Part shown: positions 46,047-57,162 of the stretch, one piece after another
Layout: every line of letters starts with the position of its first letter
Position numbering within the stretch: position 1 is the stretch's first letter
NCBI GenBank assembly: GCA_965113315.1
Contig: OZ220363.1
Length of the DNA: 64,000 bases
Reading direction: 5' to 3' (one strand)
Source: Podarcis vaucheri
Taxonomy: Eukaryota
Program-made: the position numbers and the translations under genes
The notes under the pieces: generated by a model
The model's input: only the letters and a program-made list of their open reading frames with translations
Databases searched by the model: none
What the model was told of the DNA's origin: nothing

Positions 46047-46395
46047 CTATAAATAAAAATGGTTGAAACCAATTAAAAATGGGGGTTGGGAAGGGCAGAA
46101 CCCATAATAAAAATGCAGTGATCCAATATGACATTTATTATTCAAAAACTTGTCTACATCCAAAATGTTCAGAAAATACTAAGATGTATTTGTATTAAAT
46201 ACATATAAACAAATACAAATATTTTTCTAACTTTTTGGATACAGACAGCAAGTTTTTGAATAACAGATGTCATATTCACTTTCTTTTTTTTTGCCGGGGG
46301 GGAGCAGGTAACATTTCCCTAAAAAGTATATATTTTTATTATAACTTTTTTAAAATGTTGCAGCTGTTCCATTCCATTTCTGTTAAAATGGAATC

Positions 46396-46827
46396 TGTAA
46401 TGTGTATGGGTTGCTCGTGCGTAAGTTGCCGCCTCTCCACGCTTTGTTGCCTTGCTAAACCTTTCAGTCTGGGCAGCCCTTCACTTCGTGGCTGCCTCAG
46501 TCGCTAGCAGAATCCGTCAGTGGGCGTTTCTTAAATCTTTTCCAACATAAAAGTTGTTTGACACCCAGTCTCCTCCTACTCTCTCTGCGCGGAAGTCTTC
46601 TGCGCAGGGTGGGCGTGGGTAGCGGAGAACCCGTGCTCTCCCCGCTGGTGTCCGGTGAAGAGTCCTGGAGCCCTCTCGCCGATTCCCCCATCAGCCCCTC
46701 TATATCCCTGGTGTTGCGCTGATTTGCTTCCCCATCTGCGGAGCTGCCTCTCTCCCTGCTGGGCCCTTCTCCAGCATCATTTGAGAGCCTTCCCTCCGCC
46801 TCTAGCTCCGATGTCAGTTCCCTGACA
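46396..46827 (-). mobile_element. Solo LTR (432 bp, Gypsy-like) containing a 109-codon ORF
   Basis: TGTCA...TTACA ends; perfect 5-bp TSD gaatc at 46391-46395 and 46828-46832; homologous to 54889-55321. Confidence 0.8.
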
Positions 46828-47549
46828 GAATCCTTGGTTGTTGTTTTTAAATGCACATTTATAGAACGGATGAGTACCTGGGAGTAAGTCTGAGTGAGCT
46901 CAGTGAGGCTTATTCCTGGGTAGACATTTGTGTGAATGTATTCTGAAGTAACATAAACGTTTAAAATGCTTGGGCATTTTTTCTTTTCAAGTCTTAATGT
47001 GGTGCCACAAAGACTGTAATGTCAATGCCAAGCATACCTTTTTGTGGAGGGCGCGCCAAAGATGGGGTGCCACTGTGAAAAAGAAAAGCACTCAGAGAAG
47101 GGCCTCAACCAAAGATTTTATGACACAGATAGGCTGATATGAGATGACTCCTGCCTATATTTAGGTCCCAAGACATTTAGGGCTTTGAAGGCCAATTTCA
47201 CTTGAACTGAACCAGTCATGAAGGTCCAGACAAACCAACTGTAACATGAGATAACAATAAAGTGGTGGGGATCGGTGTGATTCACCCCCCCCCCAAAGTA
47301 GAAACAGGTTTGCAAAGGCTACACAATGGTATGAACTGACAGAAAAGCAGCTTCCATGTTGATGTTTTAGTACCTGAACCACACTATTTGTTAAGATGGA
47401 TAATCTCCTCATGTTTCCCATAAAATCCATATAATCACATTGGGGTACTTTGTACCCTTTCACTGATCCCATTCACTTCAATGAGATCTGTGAAGAAGAA
47501 CTTCCCAATAGCTTCACAAAATGAACATAAAACAATGCAACAACTTCCA

Positions 47550-48050
47550 GGGGGTGTAGCTGTTTTTGCTGCAAGATGCTAACTCAACAAAGAGTCTTGT
47601 AGCACATTAAGATTTACACATTTATTATGTCATAAGCTTTCATCAAATGCATGAAATTGTGTCCTGAGTGGCAGGTACGCCACACACTTGTAAGCAGTGA
47701 GATCAGAAGGAAAGGAAATGTAGAAAAACCTAGATGGTGATAATTACCTTATTAACAGTGACTACCCACAAGGAACAATAGTTGAAAACGCAAACATTTT
47801 GGTATTGGTATGTCAACTGGTGTGCTAAACTAAAGTTCCACTGCACCAATTCAATCCACAATGTGATAACATTGAATGCTCTCAGATTGCCATCTGCATT
47901 TAAATTTGTTTGTTCAAGGATGACCACCTTAATATTAGTTACAATATGTTTAGGAATAGTGAAAAGTCCCCCAACCAGCGTTTCAGTCTCCCTGAAGACA
48001 ATCAAATTGTCATAATAAATTTATTAGTCTTTATTGTGCCATAAAACAAT
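47550..48050. mobile_element. Penelope-like remnant; similar pieces at ~40270-40345 and ~53800-54330
   Basis: aaagagtcttgtagcacattaagatttacacatttattatgtcataagcttt terminal motif recurs in degenerate form. Confidence 0.4.
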
Positions 48051-48274
48051 GTGTTTTCTAAGAGTGTGCATGAATCACATGATTTTACACTAGCCTGATT
48101 CCTGCCTTATCCTTGTTCCTTCTGTTAACCACAGACAACAAGAAGCGGAATATTTGATATCTCTTTCTATTGGGTATTGGTGCACAGATACATCTAGACA
48201 TGTCTACATAGCCACCCTTTTGATTTAGCGAAGTCAAATTTCTCTAGTCTATACAGAAAACAAAAATTACTTAC

Positions 48275-48445
48275 TGGTTGGTCAATTTTCTCCATGCTGG
48301 CCACGGAAAATGTGCAAATCGAAGAATAATTTGCTGCTGTGATTTCTTGATCCAGGGTTGTGCTGTAAAAGGCACTAATAACCTTTGTAGTTTCCATGTA
48401 ATTCCACCTTTGATTGGCAGCTCCATTTTTACATTCTTTGTGTTT
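48275..48445 (-). CDS. DCDC1: DCDC1 coding exon 5 of 14
   Basis: cacag|AAA...CCA|gtaagt; 171 nt, phase 0 to 0; KHKECKNGAANQRWNYMETTKVISAFYSTTLDQEITAANYSSICTFSVASMEKIDQP. Confidence 0.9.
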
Positions 48446-48579
48446 CTGTGAGAACATAAAATAGGCCATCCTGTTTTAAGATTATTATTATTTTTTGCGT
48501 TCTCTCTCTCCAAACTGGTATTTTTAAAGAAAATGTTTTAAAATATTCAGGTTTATCTGGTAAGATATATACCTTCCCG

Positions 48580-48634
48580 CTTCTTCTTCTTCTTCTTCTT
48601 CTTCTTCTTCTTCTTCTTCTTCTGCTTCTTCTTC
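48580..48634 (+). repeat. (TTC)n microsatellite
   Basis: Direct reading. Confidence 0.95.
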
Positions 48635-48715
48635 AGCATCCTGCTGGTTTTTAGCCTTGTTGTACATACAGTTATAATAGCACCCTTCCTGGACAGGGAT
48701 CACTTGGCCACTATC

Positions 48716-49295
48716 ACACATGCATTGGTGACCTCATGTCTGGATTACTGCAATGTATTCTATGTGGGGCTTCCCTTGTAGCTGGTCTGGAGGCTGCAGC
48801 TGATGCAGAATGCTGCAGCTCGGGTAATGACTGGTGTTCCTTATCAGAGGTATCACACTAGTGCTGAGGGGCCTGCAAGGGCTGCCTATTAGCTACTGAG
48901 CCAGTTTTAAGGTTCAGCTGCTTAAATACAAAGCCCTAAATAACTCTGGACCAGGTTACCTAAAAAACTACCTTCTTCCTTGCACAGTAAGGGCACTATG
49001 TTCACCTAATGAAATCTGTTAAGGTGAATGTTATGGAATACCCTCCCTGTTGAAATGCAGAAGGCCCCATCAGAGTTGCTATTATGTGCCAACACACCTG
49101 TTTAGGCAAGCATTCTTCCCTTGAACTGAACTTCTGATGCTATTGTTTTAACCATTTCCAAGTGTGCTAATTATTATGTTTTTAATCTTTCATTGTATAT
49201 TTTAATTAAGGATGTTTTAATGTCAGTGTTAATTATAAGTTCATTTTATAGTTGTAAACTACTTAGAAGCCACTTTGACATATAAGCAGTGTAAA
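48716..49295 (+). mobile_element. Old L2-type LINE 3' fragment
   Basis: catgcattggtgacctcatgtctggattactgcaatg (decayed HALVTSRLDYCN) and cagaatgctgcagctcgg (QNAAAR). Confidence 0.65.
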
Positions 49296-49322
49296 ACTAT
49301 ATAAGCACACAAACAGTTTTAC

Positions 49323-49437
49323 CTGAAGGACGACAGGACACCCTTGCATTTCCAGAGGACTCTTTGGATACCCATTGAGTATGCTGGGCATCGATACTGC
49401 TAGCACTAATTGGGGGTCCAGCACAAGATGAAATGTC
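49323..49437 (-). CDS. DCDC1: DCDC1 coding exon 4 of 14
   Basis: cccag|G...CAG|gtaaaa; 115 nt, phase 2 to 0; TFHLVLDPQLVLAVSMPSILNGYPKSPLEMQGCPVVLQ (too short for the ORF track). Confidence 0.85.
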
Positions 49438-50273
49438 CTGGGAACAGAAAGGTCAGGTGGAAATCAGAAGACAGTTTTTTTAAAAAAAGTTTTTTTCATT
49501 GCTAAATGTATATCTTACTTTTAGATTCTTTGAAAGATATATTTCTCAGTAATAACATTGAACTGGTTCTACACAAAGCACTGCATGGACATTTTAATGC
49601 CACAGAGTGCAGCAGTGAGTCTTAGGGATTGCTCACCCTCATCCCCAGAGTGTGACCTCAAGGGGCTTCATCTTCTGTCTCCAAAGTTCTGTGACAGTGA
49701 GGTGAGAAGGAAAGAGTGAGAAGAAAAGGTGGGAGGTGACAAGGAAAGGTTTCTTGTAAAGGACTTGGAAGTTTTGTTGAATTTTGCTAAGTAAATAAAT
49801 AATTAAAAACAATAAATAGGCACCATCCGTGTAACATGGCGCTTTACAAAAAGTTGAGATGACAAGTCCTTGCCCCAAGGGGCTTATAATGTAGAACTTG
49901 ATGGGAGGGATTCAACAGACAAAGGGAAAGGGTAAAGAAGAATAAAATATTGGGTTATTGCAGTTACACATACTAAGGCTGAGCTATGCACAAGGGTTCA
50001 CAGAAAGTGTAGCATATTTAAGACTAAAATGCAGGGTCTTTTGTAAACGGAATTTTTAATTTTGGCTGTTTTCTTAGCCCCTTGTCTAAGATGCTTTCAT
50101 TTTTGAAAGACCTTCTTAGAAAATGTTAGAACTAGCTGGTGGTTGAGGCCCGCAATATCTGCACTTGAAGAACAAGTGAAATGGAAAAGTAACTTAGCCT
50201 GATTGGAAGTCCCGCTAATAATGCAATTTAATTCTTGTGAAATTCTACCACATTTCCGACAGTGAACGTTCAC

Positions 50274-50477
50274 CTGCTATCCTCTCTCCATATCCAGTGT
50301 TGATTGATACTGTCACATTTCTTTTCCAACAAAACCACTTCAGCGCCAGAGCGCAGATCAGAATTCTCCACACCTAAAGCAAGATTTCGAAAGCTACAGT
50401 TGATAATCTTCCCATTTCTAAATTCAAACTGTTGATGATGAGTTTTCTGCAAATCTTCAGTCAGTTTAGGCTGATGC
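50274..50477 (-). CDS. DCDC1: DCDC1 coding exon 3 of 14 (ricin-B-lectin-like region)
   Basis: ttcag|G...AG|gtgaac; 204 nt, phase 2 to 2; HQPKLTEDLQKTHHQQFEFRNGKIINCSFRNLALGVENSDLRSGAEVVLLEKKCDSINQHWIWREDS, with a QxW motif. Confidence 0.88.
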
Positions 50478-50734
50478 CTGAAGTAAACAAAAAGACATAG
50501 AGCTGCAGAAAAATGCTCTGTAAATATTTCATTGCATGGTAATGGACAAAAAAGAGCAAGGCAAATGGAGTGTGCCAAAACTTCGTTTACTTCTACAACT
50601 TGTGCTTTTGACATCTGAATTCAGATACAAACCATAATACAAAGAAAGTTGAGCACAGATATTGAGAAATTGGGTAGGTGGAAAGGTGAAATTGTGGAAA
50701 GAGAGATCAACTGAAAGTATAGAATGGTCTAGAG

Positions 50735-52236
50735 CGGGGGTCGGCAACCTGCGGCTCCAGAGCCGCATGCGGCTCTTTAAAGCCTTTGCTGCGGCTCCGG
50801 GGCGGTGGCGAGGGGAGGAGGCGAGGGGCGGAGGTGAGGGGAGGAGGCGAGTGGCGGAGGCAAGGAGCGGAGGCATAGGCGCAGACTCCATGGGGCCTGA
50901 GGGGGCCCGAGCCCCCTCAAAAATTCGTTTGGGGGGGCTCCGCCCCCCCCAATAATCTCGGGCGCCCCTCCAGCATCAATCCCCACGCCCGCGCCGCCAG
51001 CCCCCGACGGGCGCCCCCTCCCCGGCTTGCCAGCTCCGTGCGCGCTCCGCCTCGCCTGCCAGCTCGGCTCCCTCCTTCCCTCGTGCAGCTTGTTTTGAAA
51101 TTCCCCTTCCAGCTCCGCCACGGCTCGCCCGCTCCCTCCGCCCTCGCCGCCGCCTCCTCCTCCTCCTCCCCCAGTCCCCTCCCCTCGGCTGTCCCCGGCA
51201 CAGGCTGCCTCACGTACGCGGCTGCAGGCAGCCCCCGGAATGGAGTCCCCGCGCGCGGAAGGGAGTGGCGGGCGCGCAAAAGGAGAGGAAGCCGCTGGCG
51301 CGCGGAAGGGGCCGGTGGATGGATGGACCGGCGGGCGGTGGAGTCACCTGGCTGGAGGGAGGTGGCGCGCAGCGGAGCTTCCAGGAGCGGCGGCAAGTTA
51401 CCTGCGCGTCGCCAAGGGTGCACCTGCCTGGCAGCCAGCTGGAGGCTGAGGGCCGCGCTATCTAGACTTTTGGCTTTTGGTCTGCAGAAAATGCACCCAC
51501 ACCCAACAGGGGGTGAGAAAGGCCTAAATAGCTTTTTATTATCACTATATGTATGGTTCACTGGGGCCCTGGTTAATTTTCTTTGGCATTTTGTGGCATT
51601 GATTATGCAGTCGCGGTTGCGTGGAATTCCACGTGGAGTTAGTTGCCTGAAGCCCCTTTTTAAACTTAAGCAGGGGAAAGTTAGGTGAAAGTTTGGTGAA
51701 TTGCTGCCAAGGAGTGTGGTGGAGTCTCCTACTTTGGAGGTCTTTAAGCAGAGGCTTGACAACCATATCTCAGGAGTGCTCTGATGGTGTTTCCTGCTTG
51801 GCAGGGGGTTGGGCTCGATGGCCCTTGTGGTCTCTTCCACATATGTATGTGAGCAGGTCTTCTCCAACATGAACTATATTAAAAACAAACACCGATCATG
51901 CCTCACAGATGACACCTTGCAAGCCTGTGTGAAAATGAAGGTGACGTCTTACAGCCCTGATGTGCAGACACTGAGCACTGAGGTTCAGGAGCAAAAGTCC
52001 CATTAACCTGGTTACCTGGTTGTAAATTAAATATTTTAATTAGCTATTAATTTGTCCTTTTTTCTTGAGATTGACAGCTGACTGCACGATCCTGTATATA
52101 TAGCATTAAGGCAAGAAACAATATATGCAGTGTTATATTTGTTTTAAATGTTGCAATGTTTTTGCGGCTCCCAGTTGTTGTTTTTTCGGAAACGGGTCCA
52201 AGTGGCTCTTTTTGTCTTAAAGGTTGCAGACCCCTG
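50735..52236 (+). mobile_element. Non-autonomous composite hAT (Charlie/Buster-like) DNA transposon
   Basis: TIRs C(G)GGGGTCGGCAACC and GGTTGCAGACCCCTG; perfect 8-bp TSD gtctagag at 50727-50734 and 52237-52244; transposase C-terminus STYVCEQVFSNMNYIKNKHRSCLTD...QKSH* at ~51836-52006. Confidence 0.9.
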
Positions 52237-53196
52237 GTCTAGAGGGAGAGCATAGAGGAGCTTATTGATTAAGCCTCATAAAGAAGTTTTCTAGACACCA
52301 CACAATACTGGAATAGACTTCACCTTTATCTAAGATGTATTGTGCTTCTCTGTGCTTACTTGAAAATTTTGAAATAAGATTAACTGAAATACAGCCCAGC
52401 AAGTCTCTTCAGTCCGACTTCATTTTTAATGTCACAGAGAGAAAACAGAATACAAATGATATGTCACTGTGAGCTGGCAATGGAATAATGAAGAGCCTTC
52501 AAATTAGTTTGTAAAATATTTCAAAATATGTAAGACATTTTGACTCTTCCTTTTAGACAATTAAAGAGTTTTTTAATGCGACTTTGCTTTTAATCCAACT
52601 TTCTTGTTCCTTTTTTCCTTCCCACCAAGTTTATATTCAACAAACTTCTTTCTCTTCTGTAGGGTCAGCATTCTTAGGTAACATTTGTATGACTTTCAGA
52701 GCCTGGGCACTAGCAGAGCTGTTAGGGGACTATGAAATGACTGTTGTGAACCTAAGATTCAAGGGTGGAGCCCCAGTTATCCCCCATCCACTGGGGGAGG
52801 AAGGGGGGAGTGGGGGGAGTGCACCGCCCCCAGCAGCGCAATCCTGGTGGGGTGCCATAGCAGCTGCCCCCCCCCGCCCGAGCTGGGCAACACACCCCTG
52901 CGGGCAGTGCACCACGCCCCTGCGGGCAGTGCGCGACACCCTCAGGAAGCACGCCAGCCACGCCCCCACCTGCTCTCCACCCCACCCCACCCCCGGTGCA
53001 GGAGCATGAAGCTCTGCCACTGCCTCCATCCCAAATTATAAGAGGGACGTGATTACCATTTCTGCAAATTTCTAATTCCACAAAGTATGGAAAGAGATTA
53101 GGGTGGATAGCAAGTGATTTTACAGAATGGTAGTGACCCAAACTGCTAGATTCTATCCTAAAAAACAATTTAGGAAATATAAATATATGACCTGAC

Positions 53197-53355
53197 CTGT
53201 ATTTTTTATATAACTCTGCATCTTCAAAGAACAGTTCATCTTTATCTTTCTGAAGGCTGCAGTCCTCATCAAAATCATAGAGATTTTGTTGCCAAGCATA
53301 TTTCATGGGTGTATAAGATGCATCTGCTTTAAGATGAGATTTTGTATGTGAAGTC
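53197..53355 (-). CDS. DCDC1: DCDC1 coding exon 2 of 14
   Basis: ttcag|G...AG|gtcagg; 159 nt, phase 2 to 2; TSHTKSHLKADASYTPMKYAWQQNLYDFDEDCSLQKDKDELFFEDAELYKKY. Confidence 0.85.
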
Positions 53356-54672
53356 CTGAAAAAAATATAAAATTCAATATGAAATTTGAAGCACTGGTGA
53401 TTGTCACCAGTTTAAATTTCTCATAAAAAGTTAAGTCATTAGTTAAAACTAAGGATTATTAAGAGATTAGCAGCTGAAACAGTCAATGGCAGTTAAACTG
53501 TGTGCAGAATTGCAATCTAAATGATTCAGATTGTAGTTTTACATTTCTTAAGATTGCGTACTCAACAATGTTTCCTCATCCAACCTTACAGTTCACACTA
53601 CTACAAGACTTTGGGGTTATGTGGGAAGCATAGAAACCAACACTTTATCACTGTATGAATATTACTTCTACCTTATGGGAAGAAGAAAAATGGAGGAGCA
53701 CCAAAAATAGAGGGAGGGAGGAAGAAGACTGCACTCAAACAGGTGCTAGGTCTATAGTTTCTTGAGGTAATCCCATGTACAACCAACAAAGGAAGGTATA
53801 AACAACGAAGTCTTGAAATAGCTAAAAAAATAACACATTTATTATGGTACAATCTTTTGTAGACTATAATTCAGCTCATTAGATGCATGAAGAGTTATCC
53901 TCAGTTGACAGGCTTATATTACTTGGGTGTAGATGGAGGAACTGGGTTGTAAATAGTGAGGTCAAATGACACTGAAATGCCAATCTGAGTCATTCAAAAT
54001 GACAGTATGAGTCATTCAGTTAAGTTATGCAAATTAAATGCAGTGGTCATTCATATTAATAATGCATCTGGAAGTTTCTTTCAGTTATAAAACCTTTCTT
54101 CAGAGTAGTATCTCTGTAAGAGACAACACAAGAGATACCACTCTAAGAACTGTGCTCCTCAAGGAACATTTCGTAGTTTCATGCACTGGACTTAGCAGCT
54201 ATGTTAGTCACTAGCTGGTGGCTTGGAGGAATCATAACCAGACTTCAGCCATTTTATGAAAAGAACTATTGTTCACAATTTGCTGAATGTTGAACCCAGC
54301 AAGAGTCATGTAACATCAATTGACCAGAACCTGCACTGCTGCTTATATGCCACCCGGACTTATAAGGCCCTGAATAACTTAGAATTTAAATACTTGAAAG
54401 AGTGCCTTTGAAATATCTGCTAGCTTGAGCCTTGCAATGTTGTAAACTCCTGGTTTTATCTAATGTTTATTGACAAATAGTAACTTTATTTTTTATTGTG
54501 GGAACCCCCCCCCCCCGGTGATCATAACTGGATGAAAGGCAATCTTTAAATGATTCAGATAAATAAATAAAATCTTATGAAAATTTTATTCTCCCATTGA
54601 CAGAAAATCCCTGGTATGTGCTATGGTAAGATGATTCTTATACCAGAAGTGATGGCTGTTATAACATACCTA

Positions 54673-55336
54673 CAGTTGGACCTCTGGTTACGAACTTAAT
54701 TCATTCCGGAGGTCCATTCTTAACCTGAAACCGTTCTTAACCTGAGGTAGCACTTTAGCTAATGGGGCCTCTTGCTGCTGCCGCACCACTGCCATACAAT
54801 TTCCGTTCTCATTCTGGGGCAAAGTTCTCAACCTGAGGTTCTACTTCCGGGTTAGCAGAGTTTGTAACCCAAAGTGTTTGTAACCCAATGTCAGGGAACT
54901 GCCATTGGAGCCAGAGGGAGAGGGAGGGCTCCAGAGGGATTCCGGAGAGCGTCCCGGGAGAGAGAGAAGCAGCACATCTTCTGGGGAAGGAAATCAGCGT
55001 AACACCAGTGGAGAAGGGGGGCAGGTGGGGGAATCGGCGAGGTGGCTCCAAGACTCTTCACCGGGAACCAGTGGGGAGAGCACGGGTCCTCCGATGCCCA
55101 CACCCTCCCTGCGCAGAAGGCTTCCGCGCAGGGAGGCTAGGAGGAGACTAAGCGTCAAGGAGCTTCTTTGCTGGAAGAAGTTCAAGAAATGCCCACTGAC
55201 GGATTCTGCCAGCAATTGAGACAGCCACGGGCGCGTGCCTGTCCAGATAGAAAGGGTTCATTCAGGCAACCAGCCAAGAGTGGCGTTGATTTACACACAA
55301 GCAACCCCTAGAACCATTACACCCGAGGTACCACTG
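54673..55336. mobile_element. Tc1/mariner MITE, same family, split by the solo LTR
   Basis: TA TSD; body matches 20467-20708 on both sides of 54889-55321. Confidence 0.8.
54889..55321 (+). mobile_element. Solo LTR (433 bp), same family, nested in a Tc1/mariner-type MITE
   Basis: TGTCA...TTACA ends; TSD cccaa/cccga; removing it restores the MITE end gtaacccgaggtaccactg. Confidence 0.8.
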
Positions 55337-57162
55337 TACTATGTTCTTATGATGTACACAAACCTACCTAAACAGGTTGTGAAAATTTCTTCAGAATAGA
55401 GTGAGATAATTGCTGTTTCCTGGGGCAAGAGAAAAATCCCAGGGTTTGTGATTCCTCTCCCTACCCACCTCACATGAAGGTCATAAATATAGGTAAGGCA
55501 GGCCAGAAGTTTGTATCTACTTGGTGCTTTAAAGTTGCTAAACAACTGGAGAGTTCTCAGCAAGAAATAATTTTTTGGGGGGAGAAACCTAAATCAACTG
55601 CTTCATTAGTGTTAGCAACATGATTTGTGTCTAAGTGAATGAGTTATTGCTCTTATTCCCTTTCTTATCTTAGAATACAGCTTGCCACAACAAATTGTTT
55701 TCCTGACACCTGTGCAGGCTTCCTAACACTCATGTTGTTTCACTTCTGCATTCTCAGCAATGGGGCAAGGGAACTGTGGAGAATTAGCAAACGCTGAGGG
55801 AAAGGTTTTGTCGGTATGTTATATAAATTTACAAATAAGAATGCTTTTTTGTGTTATAATATTGTTTGGTATGTGAATGGTTAACTAGGGTAAAAAAATT
55901 GGTTGGTAGTTTATCTCTAAGTGGGATTTTAAGATACAACTGCTTGTGTGGTTTTCAGCTGGTAACCTACCAAGAAACATCTGAAGCTCATACAGAAAGA
56001 GGAACTATCTATTGCCTGGTCTATAAAAGCAGTCCATTGCTTTTATACTGGACAGTAGAGTCAAACAGAGAAAGAACCTAGGCTATTGCCACTGCTAATA
56101 GTGATCCCCACTATAAAAAAAACTGTTAAGAGAAGGTCTCCTGAAGGTCAAATAGCCCCCCACCTTTCTCAACCTACAAATAGGGTTGAGGATTTTGAGA
56201 GACCATTTGCACACAGCTCTAATATCTCTGCTCTTATTTTGTTTGGTTTTTTTTTAAAGCAAATAATACATAATAAACGGTCCAACATAATATCTGCATG
56301 CCTAATGGAAAAGTCAGTAAATTAGAATTACAATTAGAAGTAAAAAAAAAAAAATGAACTGAAGTACTTTTGAAAGTTCATCAACATTTTAAGATGAATT
56401 TCTCCTCCTACATACATTTTTTTGTACATAATATTGTCTTTTACACACATACATTTTTGCAAAGCAGCTCTCCGCAATATAAGCATTTAACCAATTTAAG
56501 CATTTTTCATGCCTTTTTGTGCACATCACTTGGCTGGAAAACTCTTCAGCAAAATTCGGATAGTGCACATTTTGGTTCACATGTTGATTTGGCAAGTGTG
56601 AATTAGTTACATTCCCCTTTAAATGTAAATCAAATTAAATTTCTCCCTCATCCCTAATGCAAGGTCGTGAAAAGCTACCCATCTACAGAATCCAGTTTTT
56701 CTCTCAGGAAGTGAAACATTTGAACCAGCAACAGAAAACGGCTTAGGCCAATGCTAAGCACTAAACTGAAAAATGGTCTACAAGACTTTCTGCAAACTTT
56801 CTCTAAAGAAATATGTACTCTTTCAACTTATGAACTTTGAAATAGACAACACACAAGCAGAGCTGTCTACTTGCAGTTTATGGGGACTCTTATAAATTGC
56901 CAATAAGAACATATTTTGCAGGTTCAAACACATACCATTTCTCATTAAGAAAGTTATTTGTTTGAGGATAGAGAGGGATCAGGAAGAAAGCTACACAGCA
57001 TAATGGCAGGAGGTAAATGAAATATGAAGCAGGGTAAAAGGTGGACTTTATAGCAGGGTAGCTGACCTCTGGTCCTGCAGTCATGTTGAACTCCAGCTCC
57101 TAAAGTCCACATGATCAAAAATCAAGGATGGCAAGAGATATAGTCTAACATCTGCTATATAC

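Follow-up and report, generated by a model that had tools for sequence, protein, structure and literature searches.

A lacertid chromovirus whose long terminal repeat probably encodes the end of its integrase

Two solo long terminal repeats (LTRs) in a 64,000-nucleotide stretch of the Podarcis vaucheri genome (contig OZ220363.1 of assembly GCA_965113315.1; the whole stretch is referred to as the window) harbor a 109-codon open reading frame (ORF) that, in related proteins, is found as the C-terminal end of a retrotransposon integrase. We assign both LTRs, termed copies A and B, to two subfamilies of a single Ty3/Gypsy chromovirus family of lacertid lizards, and propose from sequence comparison that the LTR of this family encodes the last 109 residues of integrase, with pol continuing across the polypurine tract into U3. 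As a whole, this explanation is given a probability of about 0.85. It builds on the anatomy of the LTRs, the frame itself, a signature of selection within it, its continuity with integrase and chromodomain sequences in relatives, and a core motif present in three lineages.

An open frame shared by two solo LTRs and integrase proteins

Both LTRs start with TGTCAGGGAACTG and finish with ...CATTACA, and copies A and B are 77.5% identical at the nucleotide level across their full length (Table 1). TG...CA termini with short inverted ends and a 5-bp target-site duplication—features characteristic of Ty3/Gypsy LTRs—are present in both, in line with what had been claimed for them. The duplication is perfect for copy A, and the sole mismatch in that of copy B is a CpG transition. 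No further copies beyond A and B were found in the window by blastn, nor did tblastn detect any coding sequence for integrase or reverse transcriptase in it, and A and B are thus solo LTR-like units rather than the two ends of one element.

In each copy, a frame of 109 open codons begins at LTR base 2 and terminates at the same position without any indel, which reproduces the original prediction, and no start codon is common to the two. Recounting the identical residues gave exactly the figures reported earlier: 77/109 in total, with 29/50 in the N-terminal and 48/59 in the C-terminal part. Contigs of three organisms contain the family in abundance, and no indel with a share of 10% or more within the frame was reported from them. 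Summed contig depth (at 80% likeness) peaked at 55079–55218 in run X1 and at 55184–55218 in runs X2 and X3, and was 3- to 400-fold lower across the non-coding LTR end than across the C-terminal coding part, the factor varying with bin and run.

Table 1 Features of the window (positions are those of the whole stretch).
Feature	Position	Strand	Details
Solo LTR, copy A	46396–46827	−	432 bp, TGT...ACA; probable lacertid Ty3/Gypsy chromovirus family
Target-site duplication, copy A	46391–46395 and 46828–46832		GAATC; 5/5 identical, read directly
Solo LTR, copy B	54889–55321	+	433 bp; within the tail of a high-copy short interspersed element (SINE)
Target-site duplication, copy B	54884–54888 and 55322–55326		CCCAA and CCCGA; 4/5, read directly
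Putative integrase C-terminal tail remnant, copy A	46500–46826	−	109 codons; stop at 46497–46499
Putative integrase C-terminal tail remnant, copy B	54890–55216	+	109 codons; stop at 55217–55219
Last 59 codons (conserved basic module), copy A	46500–46676	−	LPTPTLRRRLPRRESRRRLGVKQLLCWKRFKKRPLTDSASD; dN/dS against copy B; motif shared with P0001, P0007, P0012 and P0019
Last 59 codons (conserved basic module), copy B	55040–55216	+	dN/dS, permutation and shared motif
Near-perfect 23-bp palindrome	55109–55131 (copy A: 46585–46607)		CTGCGCAGAAG-G-CTTCCGCGCAG; encodes LRRRLPRR; found by self reverse-complement blastn
LTR non-coding end (presumably R-U5)	55220–55321	+	~100 bp; least conserved part, 69% A/B identity with indels
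Very high-copy SINE	54671–54888 and 55322–~55340	−	starts TACAGTGGTACCTCGGG
CpG-island-like stretch	50500–51900		between both LTRs; GC up to 0.71

A profile built from the two frames was scored against 1.84 billion representative proteins. Its top match, P0001, is a protein of 474 residues derived from a single 1528-bp Logan contig, whose last 102 residues (373–474) cover all profile positions (1–109; E = 1.3e-31). P0001 reads ...GEEVD/VRELP...LLCWKRFKRRPLSDSASD (here and below, a slash marks the junction with the LTR part) and its terminus, ...RRRLGVKQLLCWKRFKRRPLSDSASD, equals that of copy A, with the same ...DSASD stop. Compared to the window copies, its tail lacks 7 residues, with the frame maintained on either side; the remnants in copies A and B are 66% and 57% identical to P0001 residues 373–474 and 372–474, respectively. 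Upstream of this tail, P0001 comprises the end of the integrase catalytic core, an SH3 domain (Pfam SH3_Tf2-1, residues 134–195, E = 7e-20), a chromodomain (Pfam Chromo, PF00385, residues 221–269, E = 3.4e-11) that also matches the HP1 chromodomain 1kna (E = 6e-8), and an acidic linker of ~100 residues with a net charge of −21. Ty3 Gag-Pol (7q5b) matches the integrase part with E = 7e-16. Accordingly, the chromodomain is located C-terminal to the SH3/GPY-F region of integrase, the arrangement by which chromoviruses are recognized.

In the junction ...GGPGEEVD/VRELPSE, the Asp codon must end in T, the first base of the LTR, after which GTC AGG GAA CTG follows. The P0001 contig continues for ~103 bp past its 474 codons and stop—compared to 101–102 bp past the stop in A and B—which fits a contig that ends at the LTR end. 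The suggestion that the ORF enters the 3′ LTR as a C-terminal extension of Pol/integrase is borne out by P0001, in that integrase, SH3 and Chromo domains are joined to the LTR frame in the very phase described.

Relatives were gathered by a search with P0001 residues 130–372, and pol was seen at the protein level to read in frame into the VREL region, as anticipated, in P0001, P0004, P0005, P0007, P0012, and P0019. P0004, from the Podarcis muralis proteome, possesses the integrase zinc finger, core, SH3, chromodomain, and linker followed by the LTR part (...GGPGGEVD/VRELTSETREKE..., with VRELTSE after the slash), and its gene model stops 36 residues into the latter. P0005, likewise from P. muralis, reads ...GEGVD/VRELEAE... 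at the junction. More distant is P0007 (from ENA), which is 65% identical to P0001 over residues 1–275 (integrase to chromodomain) and 47% over 130–372; its junction is ...EEGVD/VTETS... and its tail of 101 residues ends in KKRFTRHFRSTKGLLCWKRRVTEDSS. In P. muralis P0012 (50% over residues 1–275, 43% over 130–372) and in P0019, a Logan protein comprising only chromodomain and tail, the junction reads ...GGFEGGMD/VRGSG... and tails of ~210 residues end with an R/K-rich run followed by (L/V)L(N/S)WC-GG-DS(E/D)G-S. Hence, P0007, P0012, and P0019 have in common a D/V(R/T) junction (where only the first slash marks the boundary) and an end composed of a basic run, LLxW, and an acidic/Ser end. The residues preceding the junction are Gly/Glu-rich, that is, encoded by purine-rich codons, in every case, and this peptide has the look of a translated polypurine tract.

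Another relative, P0018 (92% identical in the overlap), contains RVT_1, RNase H-like, integrase Zn, and rve domains, arguing that the family is an autonomous Ty3/Gypsy chromovirus. The best matches, from P. muralis and P. lilfordi, point to a lacertid lizard as host. The order reverse transcriptase–RNase H–integrase that typifies Ty3/Gypsy elements was thus observed on related proteins, the corresponding region being absent from the window. A scan of JGI metagenomes with P0001 returned 80 loci, all of them distant chromoviruses (≤47% identity, query residues 1–~280) and none with the tail. Word searches yielded nothing with the 109-residue frame and only P0001 itself with P0001 residues 360–474; as both operate within length windows, the former covering only proteins of 60–190 residues, their blanks carry little weight.

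Selection on the LTR-encoded tail and rival explanations

To the evidence from protein relatives, the two DNA copies add a coding signature. Within the last 59 codons, the 32 substitutions between A and B are distributed 10/3/19 over the three codon positions (chi-square p = 0.0024), a pattern that exceeds chance; the ratio of nonsynonymous to synonymous divergence (dN/dS) is 0.185 (NG86), and 11 residue changes contrast with 19.9 expected (permutation p ~ 1e-4). The first 50 codons, with substitutions at 12/11/13, a dN/dS of 0.80 (NG86), and 21 residue changes versus 23.0 expected (p = 0.25), evolve about neutrally. As for the copy B residues that differ from copy A in the last 59 codons, nearly all contigs of the three organisms possess the copy A residue at 3 of 11 sites (55151, 55190, and 55214), implying that part of the replacement differences reflects decay of copy B after its insertion. 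Constraint on the active lineages is, if anything, stronger than the pairwise figure suggests.

Could the tail be translated as the end of integrase and yet have no function of its own? Under this explanation, pol merely lacks an earlier stop, and the conservation stems from overlapping cis elements of U3, be it a promoter or a palindrome. The neutral first 50 codons and the predicted disorder of the tail would fit such a scenario, as would the palindrome inside the conserved part (Table 1), whose self-match extends over 33 bp at 91% (E = 3e-7), of which 22/23 bases are the same in A and B (CTGCGCAGAAG-R-CTTCCGCGCAG across copies) and which possibly doubles as a cis element within coding DNA. 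However, synonymous divergence over the last 59 codons (pS = 0.42) is at least as high as that of the ~100 bp of non-coding LTR past the stop (0.31), while replacement sites are spared. Since synonymous sites are no less diverged than the non-coding LTR end, conservation acts on the protein and not on the DNA. That the DNA past the stop aligns worse had been noted before and was confirmed here, identity being 69% there, with three indels, whereas the last 59 codons are indel-free and 82% identical. Moreover, the LLxW and the basic core are kept in lineages whose integrase-to-chromodomain identity is down to 50–65% (41–47% over residues 130–372). We therefore consider a functionless tail improbable.

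Openness of the frame alone is weak evidence, given that the sequence contains 15% T and that, when the observed substitutions are permuted neutrally, all 109 codons stay open in 18% of cases; other frames, too, are open for up to 87 codons. This leaves room for the idea that the frame is a chance product of T-poor sequence, with the likeness of A and B due to ancestry and regulatory constraint and no protein involved. Yet chance would account neither for the bias over codon positions nor for its restriction to this frame, as dN/dS amounts to 0.94–1.67 in both remaining sense frames and in all but one of the three antisense frames; the exception (0.41) shares its third codon position with the coding frame, which explains the lower value. 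It is further contradicted by P0001, P0004, P0007, and P0012, independent predictions that join the same frame to integrase, so that a chance origin appears very improbable indeed.

The original prediction had also left room for an accessory gene. In human immunodeficiency virus (HIV) nef and mouse mammary tumor virus (MMTV) sag, protein-coding DNA is likewise shared with U3 and coding is coupled to promoter function, but each of these is a gene in its own right, with a start and a spliced mRNA of its own, whereas the lizard LTR frame is the end of pol. Although retroviruses do place accessory ORFs in U3 and the composition of the frame is distinct, a separate U3 gene with its own start or splice acceptor is hardly credible here, because the copies share no start codon and the frame, open from LTR base 2, keeps the phase of the Asp codon before it and is continuous with integrase in at least five proteins—the opposite of a gene discontinuous with pol—and we abandon this option.

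Several points weigh against our proposal that the LTR encodes a functional integrase tail. AlphaFold modeled P0001 (from a 7-row alignment) with a mean predicted local distance difference test (pLDDT) score of 41.8 and with the tail below 35; in this model the tail is disordered save for a low-confidence helix at residues 454–464, over VKQLLCWKRFK. Pfam gave no match to either 109-residue frame, a PDB profile search with the tail gave nothing at E ≤ 10, and the ESM Atlas gave no usable match to it. With no family, solved structure, or Atlas cluster matching the tail, its function is argued from composition and analogy only. The selection test compares two DNA copies (plus the protein comparisons), part of whose divergence arose after insertion. 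The polypurine tract, the primer-binding site, the paired LTRs, and the exact LTR boundary of the full element are deduced from proteins together with the boundaries of the solo LTRs. Neither a canonical TATA box nor AATAAA is visible in the LTR, and single-cell RNA reads on it are few, ~20 per direction and without strand bias (run X23).

With respect to the boundaries of the LTR, none of the loose contig or read ends listed fell at its 5′ boundary, and no junction to an internal region was obtained from them. Six single-cell RNA molecules start at 55222, 3 bases past the stop of the tail (adjacent depth 18). In some family copy, this site could mark a transcript boundary where R begins, but so small a number permits no conclusion. 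An Rfam scan of 46200–55500 gave no match.

A chromodomain without its aromatic cage and possible roles of the tail

How would an LTR come to encode the end of integrase? In an intact element, the pol frame would proceed without a stop after the integrase chromodomain, through the acidic and presumably disordered linker of ~100 residues. It would then cross the polypurine tract, translated as ...GGPGEEVD, enter the 3′ LTR at its first base and run for 109 codons inside what must be U3. The LTR-encoded part consists of a fast-evolving, acidic Gly/Ser spacer (first ~50 residues) and a basic module (last ~45–59 residues; RRR..PRRE.RRRL..LLCWKRFKKRPL.DSAS) under purifying selection on the protein. 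In P0001, the last 42 residues have a net charge of +11. Because genomic RNA carries the 3′ U3, Gag-Pol can be translated to include the tail at its end. During reverse transcription, a copy of U3 is also placed in the 5′ LTR, and there this DNA has to function as promoter region; recombination between LTRs leaves solo LTRs. As a consequence of U3 being copied to both ends, each LTR and each solo LTR carries the gene fragment. In the window copies, this fragment is a dead relic without a start codon or an upstream frame, its conservation inherited from active master elements.

In a maximum-likelihood tree of the integrase-to-chromodomain region (16 rows, midpoint root only), all tail-bearing proteins fell on one side of a branch with 100/99 support, with chromoviruses of Python, Rhineura, and environmental origin on the other. 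Nearest to the clade among proteins with no tail or a different one are P0011, P0013 (Rhineura floridana), P0015 (Python bivittatus), P0016, and P0017. In the canonical chromoviruses of vertebrates and fungi, which have a type I chromodomain, integrase, SH3, and chromodomain occur in the same order as in the tail-bearing proteins. The difference resides in the methyl-lysine cage, whose three aromatic residues in HP1 we take to be Y24, W45, and Y48. Those five relatives outside the clade keep F/Y, W, and Y at these positions, whereas in P0001 they are occupied by H, W, and E, as judged from an alignment with Drosophila HP1 (1kna). P0003, P0004, P0005, and P0007 have H/N, W, and E/A. In the lineage of P0008, P0012, and P0019 (N, R/K, and T/A), the Trp is gone as well, and Pfam did not call a chromodomain in P0008 and P0012.

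Consequently, the three aromatic residues of a type I chromodomain are not found together in the tail-bearing clade, which pairs H/N, W (R/K in P0008, P0012, and P0019), and E/A/T with a basic end containing LLxW. Its chromodomain rather resembles the plant type II or a degenerate state, and within this small sample, loss of the methyl-lysine cage appears to accompany the LLxW tail. P0013 and P0015, in which the aromatic cage is intact, also have long tails past the chromodomain; at least that of P0013 is acidic, then basic, and it ends in RQQKVRQKRGRPVSLRPKR without LLxW.

The closest precedent for this layout is group A of the plant CRM elements, in which the integrase gene runs into the LTR and the LTR encodes the CR motif (PMC3059260). 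The original prediction had drawn this analogy, and it proved apt: here, the 5′ boundary of the LTR is set by two solo LTRs, and six proteins read across it. As in CRM group A, the end of integrase would be LTR-encoded and the canonical, methyl-lysine-reading chromodomain is compromised. Differences from CRM group A are that the lizard family keeps a cage-less chromodomain fold, with the tail added behind the acidic linker instead of replacing it, and that its host is a vertebrate. No likeness between the tail and the CR motif surfaced from Pfam, PDB, and Atlas, although no direct comparison was made. We thus regard the lizard family as one that may work like CRM group A in its layout and do not file it as a member. 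While the layout is known from plant centromeric retrotransposons, we did not find such tails described for squamate or other vertebrate chromoviruses in a limited, partial literature search, which is no proof of novelty.

A functional parallel is offered by Ty1. A basic, bipartite nuclear localization signal at the C-terminus of Ty1 integrase is described as serving both nuclear import and tethering to the AC40 subunit of RNA polymerase III (PMC7459421, PMC10050235, PMC8487063). As portrayed there, the module is likewise short and basic and terminates a long, disordered integrase C-terminus. Ty1 is, however, a Ty1/Copia element without sequence relation to the lizard family, so that the analogy is functional only.

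Based on these analogies, our tentative preference is that the tail acts as a short docking motif, which would tether integrase to a nuclear or chromatin partner and affect target choice. What suggests this are the Arg/Lys clusters, the invariant hydrophobic LLxW, the acidic/Ser end, the location at the tip of a disordered arm, and the disabled chromodomain. A nuclear import signal, alone or in addition, is conceivable as well, on the model of Ty1, though we would wager slightly less on it, and less again on some other role altogether. The original prediction had likewise supposed that the Arg-rich part may bind chromatin or nucleic acid or direct nuclear import. The tail may compensate for a chromodomain that lacks the methyl-lysine cage. 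On a broader and more doubtful view, this squamate chromovirus clade would have lost the cage and shifted recognition of target sites or host factors to a U3-encoded motif (basic run, LLxW, and acidic/Ser end), making it an independent vertebrate counterpart of the CRM CR motif.

In the linker, P0001 residues 270–372 and the rows aligned to them harbor two acidic-aromatic motifs that are conserved, (D/S)F.GF(P/S) after Asp/Glu runs, plus W..VFE, all of which persist even in P0007; they may form a second short-motif interface.

Genomic surroundings, host gene models and significance

Copy B sits within the GTTTGTAACCCRA-repeat part of a SINE that, presumably, is of the Squam1/Sauria type by its look. 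The SINE reaches a summed contig depth of ~1e7 in the three organisms and is plentiful in single-cell RNA reads, too. SINE-family contigs from all three jump from 54885/54888 to 55321 with 10–13 letters of their own in between, fitting an insertion of copy B into the SINE as a discrete unit of 432–435 bp. The CpG-island-like stretch between the two LTRs is probably the promoter or first exon of a host gene, and the long ORFs on both of its strands look like GC-rich artefacts.

Fragments of the family also turned up in annotated host genes. In P0002 (UniRef100_A0A670JKI3), a Gla domain-containing protein of P. muralis, residues 16–67 correspond to the first ~50 residues of the LTR frame (E = 1e-6; 71% identical to copy B) and are followed by the Gla domain. 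The LTR part ends about at a donor-like site of copy B, GAG/GTGG (the slash here marking the splice position), and the gene model stems from a solo LTR that was exonised or else from faulty annotation. P0010, an 802-residue 'vomeronasal type-2 receptor 26-like' protein of P. muralis at NCBI, fuses integrase and SH3 domains of the chromovirus family to the seven-transmembrane domains of a receptor, probably a chimeric annotation resulting from an insertion.

For genome annotation, it follows that this 'conserved ORF' will be encountered in solo LTRs by the thousand as well as in chimeric gene models such as P0002, where it denotes the relic of a retroelement and not a host gene. More generally, most of an LTR (327/432 bp) can be protein-coding in a vertebrate retrotransposon, with evolution of its U3 bound by protein and promoter function alike. 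The tail is also a candidate module for tethering the integrase of an animal chromovirus; how this group chooses its targets has received far less study than targeting by yeast Ty/Tf or plant CRM elements. If U3 indeed encodes a targeting motif, a single stretch of DNA would act as promoter region and also as a gene for integration targeting, and its solo LTR copies, thousands in number, would spread ready-made coding fragments open to exonisation by host genes.

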